DNA from: Pelomyxa schiedti
Taxonomy: Eukaryota; Protista; Evosea
Direction of reading: 5' to 3'
Length of the DNA stretch: 64,000 nt
Assembly: GCA_020536535.1 (NCBI GenBank)
Contig: JAHLWZ010000452.1
Span: 1-64,000 of the forward strand
The translations under genes and the position numbers were made by a program. Of the stretch, positions 7,354 to 52,445 are shown one piece after another. The notes below the pieces were generated by a model. It was not told the origin of the DNA. It saw only the letters and a list, made by a program, of their open reading frames with translations, and searched no databases. Numbering within the stretch: position 1 is the first letter of the stretch; each line of letters starts with the position of its first letter.

Positions 7354-7447
7354 TGTGTGTTGTGCACAACAAGCTCAAAAATTTAAATTTACAGATCTGC
7401 AATCTGAAAGGGTTCCTGAGGTACTGAGTACAGCACTGGGCCCCTGA

Positions 7448-8814
7448 TCAGGACCAGAAATCGTCGTCGTCCTCCTCCACCTCGCTGAATAGGGCCGGGG
7501 ACTGCGCGCGGCCCGAGCGCTCCAGCGTCCTCACGCGGTTCTGCAGCGCCGCGACCTCGCCCTGCAGGCGCAGTATCACCGGGCGCAGGTGCACGACCGG
7601 GCACGCCCGCGTGTGCTCGGCCAGGTCCGGCACGGCGCCGTGCCACGGGCAGCCCATGTCCGCCGCGGGGCACGCGGCCGCGGCCTTGGGGCACTCCGCC
7701 GCCTCGTGCCTCGCCCGCGCCGACGGCGCCACCTTGGCCCCGCAGCCCAGGGCGCACGGCACCGGGCACGCGTTGATGTGCTCCTCGTAGGTCCCCCTGG
7801 TCACTGCCCCCTTGCAAACTGTGGGTGTGTTTGTTGGTTGGTTGGTTTTTTTTGGTGGTTAGTTGTTGGCGGTTGCAAGGGGGGGGGGGGGGGTTGTGGA
7901 ACGCTACACACCGGGGCACTCGACCTTGAGCTCGTCCAGGGGCTGCGTGATGGCTCTTGGGACGGCGGTCAGTGTGCCGTTCTGGACCGGGGCCCTGCAC
8001 ATCGGGCAATGGTCGCCGAGCACGATGCAGGCCCTGGGGGCGCCCTCGACCTGCCGGGTGCAGAACATGTGGCCGCAGCCAGAGTGCATCATCGGGGCCA
8101 GGAGCGGCATGAAGCAGACCGGGCACTTGAGGTGCTCCCCGCACTTTTCCAGCTCGCCCTCGATGTACACGAACTGAGGAGCGGGCGCGGGTGGAGGTGG
8201 CGGGCGGGGAGGAGGCGGGGGCGTGGGCATAGTGGTGGTGGCGGCGGCGGCGGCGGGCCGCCTAGAGCCCCGTATGATTTCCAACATGGTGTTGCGCGTT
8301 CGCATATTTGATTGGAGTCTGCTTTCTAGGGCAGAGGCGAGAGAAGAAGGCGGTGGTGGTGCGCGTGGGGCCGCGGGGTCGACTGTTCTTGAGAGTCCAG
8401 GTATCACAGGGTTAGTCCCCACCCAAAGAGAATACAAAGCAGTCACCAACAATAACGAAACCAATAAGAGATAAGCCACAGTGTTAAAAAAATGTTGGCA
8501 GGGCGAAACGACAACAAAAGCACCAAAAATGGGAGAGCACACACACAACATCCCCAGCACACACCCAACACCGGGATGCTCCTGTCATTTGTCACGGTTT
8601 TCTTTAACCTGTGGCCCTTGTGTATGTCGGTCAAAAGGGCGCCCCTTCCCGAGGATGCCGGAGGTGGGCAGCACTGCGTCGCCGCCGGCCGCGGCGGGGG
8701 CGGTGGCGGCGGCGGGGGGCAGCTACTGCTCGTGGTCGCGCTCGCGGTGGACGATGGGGACGGCGGGCCCCCGTGGTGGTCGTAACCCATTCGGCGTCGG
8801 CCCCAGTTGAACAT
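7448..8814 (-). CDS. WH2 + polyproline + RING + TRAF-type zinc finger protein
   Basis: GRGALLTDIHKGHRLKKTVTNDRS (WH2); CPVC..CGHMFC..CPMCR (RING); HINACPVPCALGC and CPKAAAACPAADMGCPW (TRAF-like Zn fingers). Confidence 0.75.
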
Positions 8815-42998: not shown

Positions 42999-45417
42999 AT
43001 GGAACACACAGGAGGAGGGAGCGTGGTGGCGACAGGATCGAACGACAGCGGGGGTGATGTGCCAATGGAGGCGATGCGCGAGTCGGGAGACAAGTTGATC
43101 GCTACGGAGACGGAGCCGCCGCGACCGCCGCCGATAAAAACTTATCGGTCTATCTTCGCTTGGGCTATTCTATTAAATGCTAGCATTGGTTCGTGAGATT
43201 GGNNNNNNNNNNNNNNNNNNNNNNNNNNNNNNNNNNNNNNNNNNNNNNNNNNNNNNNNNNNNNNNNNNNNNNNNNNNNNNNNNNNNNNNNNNNNNNNNNN
43301 NNGTCGGGAGACAAGTTGATCGCTACGGAGACGGAGCCGCCGCGACCGCCGCCGATAAAAACTTATCGGTCTATCTTCGCTTGGGCTATTCTATTAAATG
43401 CTAGCATTGGTTCGTGAGATTGGTTGTTTTATTGATGATTGAGGCCTGGCTGTTTCTTTTTTCTTTTGCTTTTCTTCTTCTCATACTGAAAACAATAGGT
43501 ACCGGCTCCCTGGGGCTCCCTAATGCATTTTTCACAGGCGTATGCTAACCGTGACCATTCCCTCTTTTCTACTCACTCAATTGTCTATTTTCGCTTCTCG
43601 TCTAATTTTTTTTCCTTACAAGGGAATTTTGTTGGCTTTACTGCTGTTTGGAGTTAGTGTTACACTTATGATAGTAACGGCAGTCTACGTCTTGGAAATA
43701 ATGGGACGTTGTAGTGGTGCTTTGCGGGCCAGGGTTGTCTGTGATAATCAACCTTTTGATAACCTTGGGGATGTGCAAGGAAATTTAATTGGGTAAACTA
43801 CAACGATTGATAGCTCTCTGGGCTAACTTTAAGCAGTTACGATAAGATCGATTACACTCGTTTCTCCTATCTTATTGGAGGAAAGTGGGGGAAAATATTC
43901 ACACTTGTCTTTGTATGTATCTATGTGTATGGGCTTCTGTGGGCTTATGTTTCCACCTTGTAAGTTTTCTCCCACTATTGCACAATGGCAAAAATCAATA
44001 ATTAAATGTAGTGGTGCAACTCTCGCCATGCTGATTTATCAGATATTTGTGAGGTCAGAGATATGTGATGTATTATCATCCCCTCCAAAAATGGATTATC
44101 GTCATCTTAACTGTAATTTCAAGTTAAAAATCAAAGAAACTGAAACTAAGCAACCCAAAAAGGTCTCCAGTGATATTGTATCTGCTCGTTGTCAATTGAC
44201 GTATTATATGTGCATCGTGGGAATGGCTTTGCTCTGTGTGCCACTGGCCCTGTTGGATCTTTCTTCACAGTGGCTCTGGCAATTCTGTCTCTCTGTGTAA
44301 GTGGAGAGAGGTAGTGAATTTACTAAAGCATTTTTAGGGCGAGATTTTTGTCCTTCGGCCTCATGTCTGTATGCATCCTAGTAAAAAAGGTCAAATATTG
44401 AACTAGTTAAGATAACATGCGCAATTTTCTTGGGTTTGCAAGGACCTCTCACTGATGAACCTGTTTGGACATTCAAATGGCAGGGATTTGCACTTTGCTT
44501 TGCATCGATAATAATATCTCAAAGCATGCATTCCAAGTACGGTTTTTTTTTTTTTTTCCCACCACAGTGGCAATTGATTGTTCCAGTATAGCAGGAGCTT
44601 GTGCACCCGTACGCGACAAATCTAAGTTGCACTGGGTGATGTTATTCATAGAAACCAGTGCTTGTTTCCTAAATGTGATGTTGGGCATGATATGCGCCAC
44701 CACTTTTCGAGGACAAACTAAAGAATTGGTTGTTCTGAACTGGTCAAACTACACAGGCCGAGATGGGGGATGGGGTGAAGGAAGCACACTGTGGTGGGCG
44801 TACATTATACAGGTTTGTATTTCCTTGAATCCGACAATTTGCCTACAAACATGCAGTTTGTGATTTTGCTTTCCCCTGTACTCATCACTTTGTCAAATTA
44901 CCCTCTGCTTTGTATCACGCTTGGCAACAATATACTTTACTTTGTCCCTGAGAAGTTGTCATCCCGGATTGGCCAGCGTCTAACCAGAGCTCTCTGCCTT
45001 TGCACAGCTTCGGTTCCTCCAATAATTTGCTCTGCAGCACTGGGAGATCTAGAGGGTATGTTGGCACTCAGCAACTAATCAATTTAACAACACACGTTTC
45101 TAGTGATATTTACTTTTACCGGAACTTTCGGTAAGTAAAAGTGATGCTTCCACTCATTACTCATTGAAAACACAGGGTTTTTCCTGGTTTTTTTTGTGCC
45201 CTGCATCTTCCAGCTACTATCTCAAAGATTTATGAGAAGACACAGTCTCACAGAGCGTACTATTTACTCGGGTATTCTTCCCATTTAACCACACTCCCTT
45301 AACACAAATTCCCTAGGCTGGTACAGCCACAAAATAGTGGTTGTTATCACTCTAATTACCGGCGTAATATCTTTCCTGTTTGTACTGGCAAGTGCAATAA
45401 CAGAGCTTTGTATTTAG
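42999..45417 (+). CDS. Amino-acid transporter family protein, TMEM104-like
   Basis: LLNASIG-TGSLGLPNAF, TAVYVLEIMGR, LNWSNY, YPLLCITLGNN; many TM segments. Confidence 0.8.
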
Positions 45418-47437: not shown

Positions 47438-50403
47438 CTATGTATGGAACAGAAGCACAACGGCTGTAATGTCGTCCGTTGATTCATGTTGGACTGCATA
47501 CTCGACGAGTGCCTCAGCAGCGAGCTATGCAAGGGTAAATGCAGAGAAGCTGTAGGAGACAAAGTTACCTTGCAGTTGGAGTCCTTCTTCAAGGCATTAC
47601 TAACAACCTGAACGGCATTCTCATTGCTGACATTGTTCCAAACCCCGTCAGTTGCTAGAATGAGAAATGTGTCATCCGCCGTTATTATATGCTCCGTCAC
47701 TTCCGGTACCGCTGATAAACAACCGGGTCTTGTGCAGTTCAGTTTTCTTCTATTTTAGAGAGGAGAAATACGGATATTCTGGGGATTTCTTCAATTCAAA
47801 GTCTCCCAATGAGCGTGACACTTCCATTATTCCAAAAAGGCGTTGGTTTTGAACTTTACCCCCATTTTCCACTATTCTTGCCATTTCTGTTGGCGTACTG
47901 GCCTACGCATTTTAATTTTACATGTTAACCACTATGTAATACCTTGTGATCAACAGAAAGGGGAACAGCAGTGTCCGACGTGCAGAGAACAGCGCGAGAA
48001 TCACCCAAGTTGGCTATAAAAAGCTTTTTCCCAAGAATGAGTGCGGCTAGAACGCATGTTCCACAGGTTTTATCTACATTATCTATGACAGACACTAGTT
48101 ATTGCGAGAAAATCTGAGTACTATTACCAGCGTTTTTGAGTTGCTTTGCCAATTCCTCGTCAGTTACTTTGAAGCCTTCCTCGAGTGCCTGTTTTGGGTG
48201 CTGTGGGAAGGTCTCAACAGCAGTAACGTGATTGTAGAGATTTTGTGCGACATATGTACTTGCATATGAATCGGAATGGCCGTCGCATACTAATGCAAAA
48301 GTTGCTCCTGGGGAGAAGTCAAGAACAAAGTGGGAAGAAGGCTACGCACCGCTTCCCACGATAATATTGAAGGTATCCTGGTTATGGGCGTGCCGCTTCC
48401 CAGTTTTCGTGCATCCAGTGGCAGTTGCATTAGGTTCCTATGGAAACACACAGCGGTTAGATTTTGCACTGAGTTAATTTTGTTCGCACTGGTGTGTGAA
48501 GAGTGCCACTGCCAGAGTTGGGTAGAGCAACGTCCTGAGGTGCAGGAGGAAAAGGTATCTTCGTGCTTTTAGTTGTGGAACGATTTTTTTTATGAGATAA
48601 AATCAGCTCTGCTCTTGGAGCCGTGGAGACATCCAGATCATGTGGGGAAGAAGGTGCAGAATTGATCTTCCGGTTGTTTTTTTGTGCAAGTGGCCGGTCA
48701 GGCCTTGCACTGCCAGGAGAAATGTTTCCTCTAACCCCCTGTGTACATTAGAGATGATCTAAATTTGAAGGTTATACCTGTAGGGGAAGAGTTGCAATCC
48801 TGGTCCCATTACGGGGTTTGTCTCCTTTATTTATGTGTCTATCTTGCTCCTCAGGGCCTGAGTTACTTTGGTTTGGAGTGTCTTCTTTTTGAAGGGTCTC
48901 CAATTTCTTCTCCGTACCAGGTTGTTGAGGGGTTTGGTTGTTATTCTCCATTACTTCCGCTGTGCCCTCAGCTTTAACAGATTGCTCAAGTGGAGGTTGG
49001 TGGGAGCCTGTATCTTGTTCTTCAGGTAGTGCGCGACTATTTTGAGTTATCAATGAAGGAGATGCAGATTGCTGAACAATTGATGCCACCGTGGCGGGCC
49101 TATTTGATTTTGGCGTGCCTGTTGGCAATTTTGTTTCTGCATTTACACCCACGGAGCGGGAAAGTGGATGAGACGGTGTCTGCGGTTTTGATGGAGCCAC
49201 ATCTGGTTGAACCTGATTTGTTGCGGAGATTGTGGTCTGCTTAGGGTGGGGTGTTTTTGGTGAGTGTGGGCTTGCATCCCTATGAGGGGACTGGGTAGGA
49301 ACCTTGTTGCGGGAGGAGAGCGATTGTTCCGCCGATGTGTGTGGAGAAGGTAATGTTTGCACAGGACGTTCTTCTACTGTTGGAGTACTGCGGTGACCTT
49401 CCACATCAAGTTGTTTTGGTAACTGAAGAGGGGGTGCTGCTGTGGGTGTGAGTGGTACTGCCTGGTGTGGATATGGAGAAATCTGGCGGTTATGTGGTGA
49501 CACTGTGTGAGGTGACTGTATGCGACTCGAGTGAGGAGAGTGGGGTACATTAGGTGCCTGAGAGCCCATAGTTCCCTCATCTTGAGGATGTTGTGATTGG
49601 ATTTCTTGTGAAGGCTTTCGGTGAGAAAGTGCCGCAGGTTCCTGTTCCAACGTAGGTTTGGACTGTGGGGTTGGGGGCTTGGCAGCCTGGGGACCTTGTT
49701 TTCCAACTGAGCTGGGACGCTTCTGAGGTGTAGGTGGTTTGGCACTGGATTCCCCTTGTGGGCCTGTCTCCTGTGTAGGAGGATTTTCCGTTTGGGCAAC
49801 GAACGAGGTTGGGAGGTCCACAACGAAAACTTGAGTGTGAGGCGATCGGGGGTGCAACTGGCGCGAACGGTAATATTTACGCGCAGCAGTTTGCTGGGGT
49901 TGGTTCGCTTTTCCCGAGTGTGGAGTTAGTGGCGGAATCTGAACACGTACACTGAATTGGGCATCTAGGGCGGCTTTTGCGCCAAAGTACTCAACGCCGA
50001 AGCTGTACGGATCTACCGGTTTGTTGCGCACCAGTTCTCGTGCAAAGGAGCGCAAGATCTGAGCGAAACCAGGCGGGATCTGCGGAAAGTACCTCCCTCT
50101 GCCGTTTATGTCGCACTCTTCTTCCGCAAGGCATTCGCCCTCTGACGTGGCCTGCGGCTTGTTGCGATTGTTGTTGGTAGATGCACCGAAATGGGAGAAA
50201 AACAAGGAAGATGCCGAAGACGTTGTAGAGCACGGCGGTGACAGTACTTGCCTGCCCTGCAACTGCAAACACAGGTGGAACTGGCGGCGCCTCAATTGGG
50301 CCTCGAACTTCTGTTGTGCAATTGGTATCAACAGTTGATTGCCATGTTTTGGTTGTTGCTGTTGTGTGCCTAGTTTGGTGTCCTCGGACGACAAACCGCT
50401 CAT
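47438..50403 (-). CDS. PP2C/PPM phosphatase with N-terminal RIIa dimerisation/docking domain and long Pro/Ser/Gln linker
   Basis: IPPGFAQILRSFARELVRNKPVDPYSFGVEYF (RIIa D/D); HNQD, CDGH, ANLGDSRAVL, DHK, VSRSLGDF, LATDGVW, STDDITAVV. Confidence 0.88.
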
Positions 50404-50677: not shown

Positions 50678-52445
50678 ATGAGCTGTTGCACTCTTGACAA
50701 GGAGAAACCATCCGCATGTTCATCAGAAGCCCCAGTGCCCGTGGACCCGACCATAAGGCTGACCACCACCCGCGTCTCGTGTGCAGACTTATGGGAGCAC
50801 GTGCAGGCCAGGTTCTCGTGGAAGAGAATGTCGCACGGCATCACGCCAGGAGTGTACGTTCTTGACGATAGTGGCAGATACGACCCATCAAAGGGCGTAT
50901 TGCCACCAAAGGACACTCCCATTCTCGTCACAGCCAACTACGCTCTGAGGTCCGCTTCTTTATTTATTTTTTCGGTTTTTTTGGTTTTTTTTCCCCCCCA
51001 CTGACAGTCAAATAGCTTTGATTCACTTCGGTCTTGTATTCCGGCCAGTGCACAGCCGGTTTATATTCTTGTTATTGACACGAAGGCAATCAATGTGTGG
51101 TGCGCTGCTGGAAAGGGTACTTTTGGAACTGACGAACTGTGCAAGAGGATAGTGATGCATGATTTGCAGTCTCTTGTTAGGTGTGGAGAGAGTCAATAAT
51201 ATTTAAAGTGTACTTCTTTCCTCTCTAATTCCTTCATCATCATATAGGCACCGTCTGCTTATTCTCCCTCAGCTTGGGGCAACTGGAGTTTCTGCACGCG
51301 AAGTTAGGGAACGAACTGGATTTACTGTAAATCCTCCCTTCCAACACCCATCAACTTACCTGGTTATTACAGGTGGAATGGGGTCCTGTCCGAGCTGCTG
51401 ATTTGCCAGTGTACCTTTCTAAATCACCAAGGAGAAAAACGAACGAAATGCGTCGTGTAGAATTTCCCATTAAGGATCGTGCGGTACTTATTCCAGTGGA
51501 AGTACTCTCGAACTTGAAGTACAAAGCCATTATAACGGTGAGTGCAAATTTTAGGAAATTGCCTACCTAATTTAATATGTAGTTCTTCGCACTTCTATTT
51601 GGAGGGCTATTTTCTGCGGTAGGCTTCCTCCTTGCTGTATTCTACGGGTATGTTATGGCATTTTATGTAGCCTGTCACCTTCTTATAACAATAAGGACTA
51701 TACTATTCCCGCTCTGTCTTCCTTTGCTACCAACGAGACACTTCACGACAAAGGGTCTTATCTTAGGAGTGGTCGGCTTCTATTTCTATTTGTCTTATTG
51801 ACTCATATAACACTTACAGATATGCACTCTCTCTCACTTGTTCGTTTGGCACAAGCTGGGTTGGGATTGGGCAGACACAACATTTTCTCTTATCACCGGC
51901 ATTTTCACACTGATTGCCATGCCTATTCTTATTTCCCTCTGGGCTCTGAATTTCTCTGGATGCACAACCTTCTCTTCCAAAAGTGAAACACTGAAGGAAA
52001 CACTTTGGTGGCTATGGGTAAGGCAAACACAAAACAACTGTACTCCCTTACTAACCCACCGCTCCAGTTCGTTCCAACCATCTCTTCTAGAGCCAGCAAA
52101 TTCTACAAAACAGAACCTACACTTGCCATTGATACAAACAAATGCGTTGGGTGCCATATCTGCCAAGATGTCTGCCCCCACGATGTCATATCAGGTTTGT
52201 TGCATCCAAACCAACAAAATCCTTGCAACTCAACTCATTCAATCCCACCAGTTGTGAATGGCAAGGCCACAATTTCTCGCCTGAATGACTGCATGGAATG
52301 TGGGGCCTGTGCAATGAACTGCCCAACAAAGGCAGTCACTGTTGAATCAGGAGTTGGTTGTGCCTGGGCTATAATCATGTCAGCCATTAATGGAAGGGAA
52401 ACAGTTGGTTGTGGTTGTGGCGATGGCTGCTGTTCCTCCAACTGA
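50678..52445 (+). CDS. hgcAB: Fused HgcA-HgcB (mercury-methylation corrinoid protein + 2[4Fe-4S] ferredoxin), 9 exons, ~446 aa
   Basis: Exons 50678-50949, 51016-51180, 51248-51326, 51373-51537, 51583-51647, 51696-51771, 51820-52017, 52068-52194, 52252-52445, all GT-AG and in frame. Motifs: TPILVTANYALSFDSLR, ILVIDTKAINVWCAAGKGTFGTDEL, HRLLILPQLGATGVSA, VEWGPVRAADLP, LNFSGCTTFSS, CVGCHICQDVCPH, CMECGACAMNCP, GVGCA, terminal CGCGDGCC. Confidence 0.93.

Follow-up and report, generated by a model that had tools for sequence, protein, structure and literature searches.

Known HgcAB systems and their relatives

HgcAB-dependent production of methylmercury is described in bacteria and archaea only in the literature examined. 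The closest described system to the locus reported here is the canonical pair of HgcA and HgcB (NCBIfam families NF040863 and NF040864), known from Pseudodesulfovibrio mercurii ND132, Methanomicrobia and Chloroflexota—two separate polypeptides, with hgcA located just upstream of hgcB. In purified HgcAB, cobalamin is reduced to Co(I) by the clusters and methylated by SAM, the methyl donor; the cap-helix cysteine ligates the methyl-cobalt, and the methyl group then passes to thiol-bound mercury (PMC11588087). In P. mercurii, mutagenesis identified Cys93 and the membrane domain of HgcA as necessary, along with Cys73 and at least one of the C-terminal cysteines of HgcB (PMC7305189), and N(V/I)WC(A/S)(A/G)GK is used as a high-stringency HgcA motif (10.1101/2022.03.14.484253).

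HgcAB-like fusions (NF043039), e.g., those of Pyrococcus furiosus and Methanococcoides methylutens, likewise carry a corrinoid-binding domain, a membrane domain and a ferredoxin in one chain, and no mercury methylation was found in either of these cultured organisms (PMC4646819, PMC5893877). In the 15 HgcAB-like fusions sampled in this study, the cap motif has a different ending (e.g., NVWCAATG or NVWCAAGA), and CMECGA, GxGC and the cysteine tail are missing. Such fusions exceeded the family cut-off in 14 of 251 sampled genomes (Desulfacinum phylum; L125-L138), where they make up at least three subfamilies, some of them beside a canonical hgcA. A more distant relative is AcsC/CdhE (PF03599, NF003195), with a homologous corrinoid-binding domain (PDB 4djd, E 2.5e-8). 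We also observed ESM Atlas clusters of bacterial proteins of about 540 aa, mostly from Chloroflexota, that join a CdhD/HgcA-like domain to a SAM methyltransferase domain—a combination of interest, SAM being the known methyl donor of HgcAB.

Structure and expression of the Pelomyxa gene

The locus lies in a stretch of 64,000 nt (the window) from the genome assembly of Pelomyxa schiedti (PMC8887013), in which the original prediction had placed an intron-containing fusion of hgcA and hgcB. Reading the gene in three frames yields successive HgcA and then HgcB pieces with short GT-AG intervals between them, and removal of eight GT-AG introns (45-67 nt) leaves a frame of 446 codons with no internal stop, as predicted (Table 1). 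The spliced model is identical to the public protein KAH3762501.1, annotated as 'carbon monoxide dehydrogenase'—a name that derives from the AcsC/CdhE homology—and the assembly contains one copy of the gene. Neither intron 5 nor intron 8 contains a stop or shifts the frame, and RNA was needed to decide on both. All eight joints are present in RNA contigs from two single-cell runs of one sample, a single contig of 1242 nt extends from 50790 to 52442 across both the HgcA and the HgcB halves, and joints 4-6 and 7 recur in two RNA runs of a second study. These joints rule out a seven-intron model (462 aa) in which intron 5 is kept in frame, and bear out the predictions of a fused and of an intronised gene. 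The RNA evidence consists of assembled contigs and speaks to presence, not to level or strand. Exon 1, which holds an insertion of about 10 aa absent from the relatives in the alignment, lies under RNA contigs from 50790 onward only; three substitutions in other RNA runs are all synonymous.

Table 1. Features of the hgcA-hgcB fusion gene (positions refer to the window; E values are those of the NF040863 matches)
Feature	Position	Strand	Description
hgcA-hgcB fusion gene	50678..52445	+	9 exons, 446 aa, identical to KAH3762501.1
Exon 1	50678..50949	+	N-terminus and start of corrinoid-binding domain; E 2.9e-8
Intron 1	50950..51015	+	66 nt, phase 2; RNA-spliced (X3, X4); position matched in L099
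Exon 2 (cap-helix exon)	51016..51180	+	E 9.2e-19
Cap-helix motif NVWCAAGK	51092..51115	+	Residues 117-124
Intron 2	51181..51247	+	67 nt, phase 2; RNA-spliced; position matched in L099
Exon 3	51248..51326	+	Corrinoid-binding domain; E 3.3e-8
Intron 3	51327..51372	+	46 nt, phase 0; RNA-spliced; position matched in L099
Exon 4	51373..51537	+	End of corrinoid domain, start of membrane domain; E 3.3e-13
Membrane domain	51514..51948	+	Residues ~220-317, exons 4-7; four predicted membrane helices
Intron 4	51538..51582	+	45 nt, phase 0; RNA-spliced (X3, X4, X5); position matched in L099
Intron 5	51648..51695	+	48 nt, phase 2; RNA-spliced (X3, X4, X5); position matched in L099
Intron 6	51772..51819	+	48 nt, phase 0; RNA-spliced; position matched in L099
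Fusion junction	51949..52142	+	Residues 318-365
Intron 7	52018..52067	+	50 nt, phase 0; RNA-spliced (X3, X4, X6); position matched in L099
Ferredoxin motif 1, CxxCxxCxxxCP	52143..52178	+	Residues 366-377
Intron 8	52195..52251	+	57 nt, phase 1; RNA-spliced; position matched in L099
Ferredoxin motif 2 with HgcB signature CMECGA	52290..52325	+	Residues 396-407
GVGC motif	52350..52361	+	Cys419, equivalent of HgcB Cys73 (PMC7305189), ~12 residues past motif 2
Cys-rich C-terminal tail	52404..52433	+	Four Cys; vicinal pair equivalent to HgcB Cys94/Cys95

The surroundings agree with the original description in part. A spliced MIT-domain gene does lie to the right, whereas the PP2C gene said to border the fusion on the left is one gene further out. 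The immediate left neighbor is an ORF of 543 aa on the minus strand (48772-50403) with a weak match to the RIIa domain (PKA regulatory dimerisation); this low-complexity ORF is arranged head-to-head with the fusion gene, about 275 nt away, and has no cover from the RNA contigs aligned here. The claim that no gap lies nearby was correct: the nearest assembly gap is at 43203-43302, none falls within 7 kb and the flanking genes are in gap-free sequence.

Canonical HgcA and HgcB signatures in a single chain

Profile searches against NCBIfam were performed exon by exon, whole-protein searches used KAH3762501.1 (P0151), and the spliced models of P. schiedti and of its relative L099 (see below) served for frame checks, local BLAST and trees. 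The best match was NF040863 for each HgcA-side exon piece, with exons 5-7 also matching this family, and NF040864 for each ferredoxin piece, the HgcAB-like profile ranking behind both. The whole protein passed the cut-offs for HgcA (309.5 bits against 275) and, marginally, for HgcB (100.4 against 99), but failed those for HgcAB-like proteins (231.7 against 285) and for AcsC/CdhE (54.2 against 306, over residues 76-190 only)—the profile comparison suggested alongside the prediction fell on the side of HgcA and HgcB. The cap-helix cysteine, membrane domain and C-terminal ferredoxin that AcsC lacks are all three present in the Pelomyxa protein.

Identity to canonical proteins is 42-46% over the HgcA half and reaches 57% over the HgcB half. 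The Pelomyxa protein has in common with canonical HgcAB the NVWCAAGK corrinoid domain, the membrane domain, two CxxCxxCxxxCP motifs, CMECGA, the Cys73 equivalent and the cysteine tail; the cap motif was found where the original prediction had placed it, and both ferredoxin motifs that it named were confirmed. The cysteines essential by mutagenesis are all there: Cys120 (51101-51103) corresponds to Cys93, the cobalt ligand (PMC7305189), and residues 220-317, Cys419 and the four-cysteine tail correspond to the other parts that P. mercurii needs. The combination of C(M/I)ECGA and GxGC occurs in all five members of the eukaryotic-type clade described below and in 38 of 38 canonical HgcB, as opposed to none of the 10 HgcAB-like fusions scored; in addition, neither the GVGC cysteine nor the cysteine tail was found in any of the 15 HgcAB-like fusions fetched. 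With its ligands present, the protein would be expected to bind cobalamin and two [4Fe-4S] clusters. The differences from the canonical system—known here from sequence—are one polypeptide instead of two, four membrane helices instead of five, eight spliceosomal introns and residence in a eukaryotic nucleus.

The fusion junction runs from the canonical HgcA TM4-TM5 loop through two short helices, which replace TM5, to the N-terminus of HgcB, such that TM5 is absent and four of the five membrane helices of HgcA are predicted. This loop was found in 153 canonical HgcA; the HgcAB-like fusions all lack it and have a different junction. An AlphaFold model (148 sequences, pLDDT 86.5, pTM 0.84) predicts the cap helix (118-122), four membrane helices, two linker helices, the ferredoxin and the HgcB helical extension. 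For an earlier and weaker model, the best structural match was the HgcAB model 9a0b, chain A (E 7e-14); a PDB sequence search found no experimental structure of a single-chain HgcAB, and the fold search returned only the computed model 9a0b. In the published complex, a Tyr303-Asp8 contact brings the HgcB N-terminus to the end of the HgcA membrane domain, and the published model has the helical extension of HgcB packed against TM4 and TM5 (PMC7305189). Since the HgcB N-terminus touches the HgcA membrane-domain end, the junction probably lies where both proteins meet anyway. Intron 7 is a few codons from the HgcA/HgcB boundary; because an intronless relative shares the junction, this intron is unnecessary to explain the fusion.

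A eukaryotic family with shared introns

A search with the ferredoxin half, together with follow-ups, recovered four further sequences with the same junction (L099, P0001, P0003 and P0152). The five members are 41-59% identical, form one clade (SH-aLRT 97-99) and all keep the Cys73 equivalent and a tail cysteine. The most informative relative, L099, sits on a metagenome contig of 1.19 Mb (ERZ21831265 ctg82076l) whose genes are fragmented like intron-bearing genes (RING, PARG and kinase pieces). Its gene model, which is sequence-based and has no RNA of its own, contains nine GT-AG introns of 37-46 nt and encodes a protein of 430 aa, 54% identical to that of Pelomyxa. Eight of these introns coincide with the Pelomyxa introns in both alignment column and phase (chance about 5e-20 by a rough count). 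Eight shared introns at this level of identity show an old, inherited eukaryotic family rather than contamination or a recent transfer from a symbiont. Two genes neighboring L099 had no match in the P. schiedti assembly.

P0001 and three near copies are intronless contigs of 1.4 kb with a 5' leader like that of Pelomyxa, and are probably mRNA of a relative. P0003 (L096; SRR22746131 contig, positions 1161-2408) is likewise intronless, lies on a 3.2-kb contig and has a GC3 of 0.71; its contig also holds a neighbor gene with GT-AG introns and long pyrimidine tracts, for which no homologue was found. The source is probably a different eukaryote and may be an anaerobic protist unrelated to Pelomyxa—a situation that, if true, would mean either that the gene passed between eukaryotes or that its origin is very old. 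P0003 has one tail cysteine only and falls below the HgcB cut-off, and P0152 is partial (1.2-kb contig). Eukaryotic origin has been demonstrated for two of the five members and is likely for another two. A plasmid search gave no match, and a metagenome scan with the junction alignment, limited by introns, recovered nothing beyond the P0001 contig and two hgcA loci of the ordinary kind.

Two further candidates were rejected as family members and are bacterial rearrangements instead: P0153/P0273 (bacterial-type contig L097, 7985-9244) and P0119 (L177). P0153/P0273 joins an HgcA half and an HgcB half, both canonical, in a single frame, but its junction differs, the end of the membrane domain and the cysteine tail having been lost, probably through deletion or frameshift, and it groups with Chloroflexota-type HgcA and not with the eukaryotic-type clade. 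Such read-throughs, one of which occurs in two assemblies, are mistakable for true fusions.

An intron-containing gene for a DUF5714 protein (PF18978; Cys-rich and prokaryote-type) lies directly upstream of the L099 fusion (~7384-8420, plus strand), and DUF5714 genes with introns also occur in P. schiedti (C573:49531-49857, C573:81930-82289 and C1176:9609-9935). The matches at C573:49531-49857 and C1176:9609-9935 have equal scores and lengths, which suggests a recent duplication or one locus assembled redundantly. Co-transfer of DUF5714 with hgcAB was considered and rejected: the two adjoin in L099 only, lie apart in P. schiedti and were together at none of the prokaryotic hgcA loci (flanks of 0.5-3 kb).

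Phylogenetic position and origin

Three quick trees were reconstructed, with Firmicutes and Desulfovibrionales unsampled; L022, a frameshifted HgcA, was wrongly labeled as outgroup in one of them and was left out of the later ones. In all three, the eukaryotic-type clade falls on the canonical side of the long branch leading to the HgcAB-like fusions (SH-aLRT 91-100), together with methanogen and Chloroflexota-type HgcA (support 88-95), and its own branches are long. The HgcAB-like fusions form a clade of their own from which the Pelomyxa protein is absent (SH-aLRT 95-100). The protein thus groups outside AcsC/CdhE and outside the HgcAB-like fusions in these trees, as the original prediction had anticipated.

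The proposed horizontal acquisition fared well in its core: uptake from a prokaryote is the best reading of the patchy eukaryotic distribution, with an old date, and the clade may be nested within canonical HgcAB or sister to it. A methanogen is a plausible ancient donor. Recent uptake from one of today's symbionts, Methanoregula or Syntrophus, was rejected, given the introns shared at 54% identity and a best prokaryotic HgcA at only ~46%; the available part of the symbiont supplements of PMC10579272 contained no hgc terms. On this reading of sequence and distribution, the ancestor of an anaerobic protist group would have acquired a prokaryotic hgcA-hgcB pair, the two genes would have fused with loss of the last membrane helix of HgcA, and the fused gene would then have gained introns and been inherited vertically.

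Two other accounts of the gene's origin were weighed. A symbiont or prey hgcAB pair could have been joined into the assembly, or a recent insertion could be decaying there, and the circumstances invite the suspicion: the assembly was made from single cells with endosymbionts that include Methanoregula (PMC10579272), a genus with hgcAB (PMC5893877). Contamination or misassembly is, however, already refuted by the RNA joints, seen in two studies, and by the eight intron positions shared with an independent long contig; the gap-free surroundings, the modest identity to the best prokaryotic match and a reading frame with neither stops nor frameshifts point the same way, and we consider this account to have practically no chance. 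The fusion gene resides in the nuclear genome of the amoeba. Alternatively, the protein could belong with, or descend from, the non-methylating HgcAB-like fusions of the Pyrococcus/Methanococcoides type, the fused state being ancestral. It is indeed fused, CdhD+Fer4 fusions make up the nearest ESM Atlas clusters (with scores of 0.82-0.84, at the level of a lead), and AU tests did not reject a placement beside the HgcAB-like clade, as sister to all canonical HgcAB (p 0.08 and 0.65)—in the concatenated tree, the constrained topology was even 6.5 lnL better (the p of 0.65). Against this stand the exclusion of the Pelomyxa protein from the HgcAB-like clade, the failed NF043039 cut-off, a median identity of ~29% compared to 42-45% for canonical HgcA and the canonical TM4-TM5 loop; such descent is very improbable in our view. 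We favor an independent fusion of a canonical pair, as the junction and the motifs suggest.

Predicted activity and alternative functions

By analogy to HgcAB, the Pelomyxa protein is most likely a membrane-bound, SAM-dependent cobalamin methyltransferase that works in the same manner. We infer its topology and mechanism, as well as the direction and source of the transfer, from these comparisons. With an even number of membrane helices, the ferredoxin and the corrinoid domain would lie together on one side of the membrane, where the two [4Fe-4S] clusters would reduce the bound cobalamin to Co(I); SAM would methylate Co(I), with Cys120 as ligand of the methyl-cobalt, and the Cys-rich tail and Cys419 would hand over the thiol-bound substrate. 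Conversion of Hg(II) to methylmercury would probably be a side reaction, because the substrate for which HgcAB is selected is unknown even in bacteria. In the P. schiedti assembly, genes for SAM synthetase were found together with other B12-binding proteins and a match to methylmalonyl-CoA mutase, and several cobalamin enzymes seem to operate in the amoeba. In particular, B12-binding domains over the Pfam cut-off, along with the methylmalonyl-CoA mutase match, were located at C996:21913-22149, C73:25185-25475 and C939:1287-1697. The symbionts of P. schiedti express genes for cobalamin synthesis and transport, according to the supplements of PMC10579272. Together, the host SAM synthetase and B12 proteins and the symbiont cobalamin genes make a supply of cofactors plausible.

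Whether such an enzyme would act on mercury is the more delicate question. We consider it somewhat better than an even bet that the gene encodes a functional, canonical-type HgcAB in a single chain within the amoeba nucleus, able to methylate Hg(II). Counted against this are the inactivity of the tested fusions (which belong to a different clade), the loss of TM5, the marginal HgcB score and the long branches. A competing view, to which we assign a substantial but minority share of our belief, is that of an HgcAB-derived cobalamin and Fe-S enzyme with no meaningful mercury methylation today and another reaction in the amoeba, e.g., reductive dehalogenation of halomethanes, methylation of other metal(loid)s or thiols, or a step in SAM or corrinoid handling. 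That several eukaryotes have kept the gene for long implies a use under selection, and mercury methylation is not thought to be the use for which HgcAB is selected (PMC7305189); a 2026 preprint reports dechlorination of CCl4 by heterologously expressed HgcAB (10.64898/2026.04.26.720869). The loss of TM5 and the long branches fit this view as well, and so does a weak negative, MerB not having been found in the P. schiedti genome. However, the mercury-handling cysteines, i.e., the Cys73 equivalent and the tail, are kept throughout the five members, and a different physiological substrate is compatible with mercury methylation as a side reaction.

Implications for mercury methylation

No report of a eukaryotic hgcAB was found in the literature searched, which included few subscription papers, and an earlier notice is possible; the two Pelomyxa papers (PMC8887013, PMC10579272) mention neither mercury nor hgc, and eukaryotes are not discussed in the hgc surveys examined. 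The enzyme type is known, and what appears to be new is a single-chain form that is eukaryotic, bears introns and has its canonical cysteines intact. It would easily have been missed by hgcA surveys, since its introns leave it in pieces in metagenomes and surveys discard fused genes: gene calling on the 1.19-Mb contig of L099 called only an 84-aa piece of the fusion gene, and the consensus protocol for hgc surveys recommends that fused genes be put aside.

The natural single-chain HgcAB is an attractive target for experimental structure determination, and makes it testable whether the fusion itself or the loss of HgcB cysteines explains the inactivity of known fusions. What HgcAB is selected for likewise becomes testable, because a eukaryote has kept the gene for long, outside sulfate-reducing or methanogenic metabolism. 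One or several lineages of free-living anaerobic protists may methylate mercury with a nuclear, single-chain HgcAB of their own, a proposition that we place slightly short of an even chance. If it is true, eukaryotes would be direct producers of methylmercury in anoxic sediments, and this source would sit one step higher in the food web.
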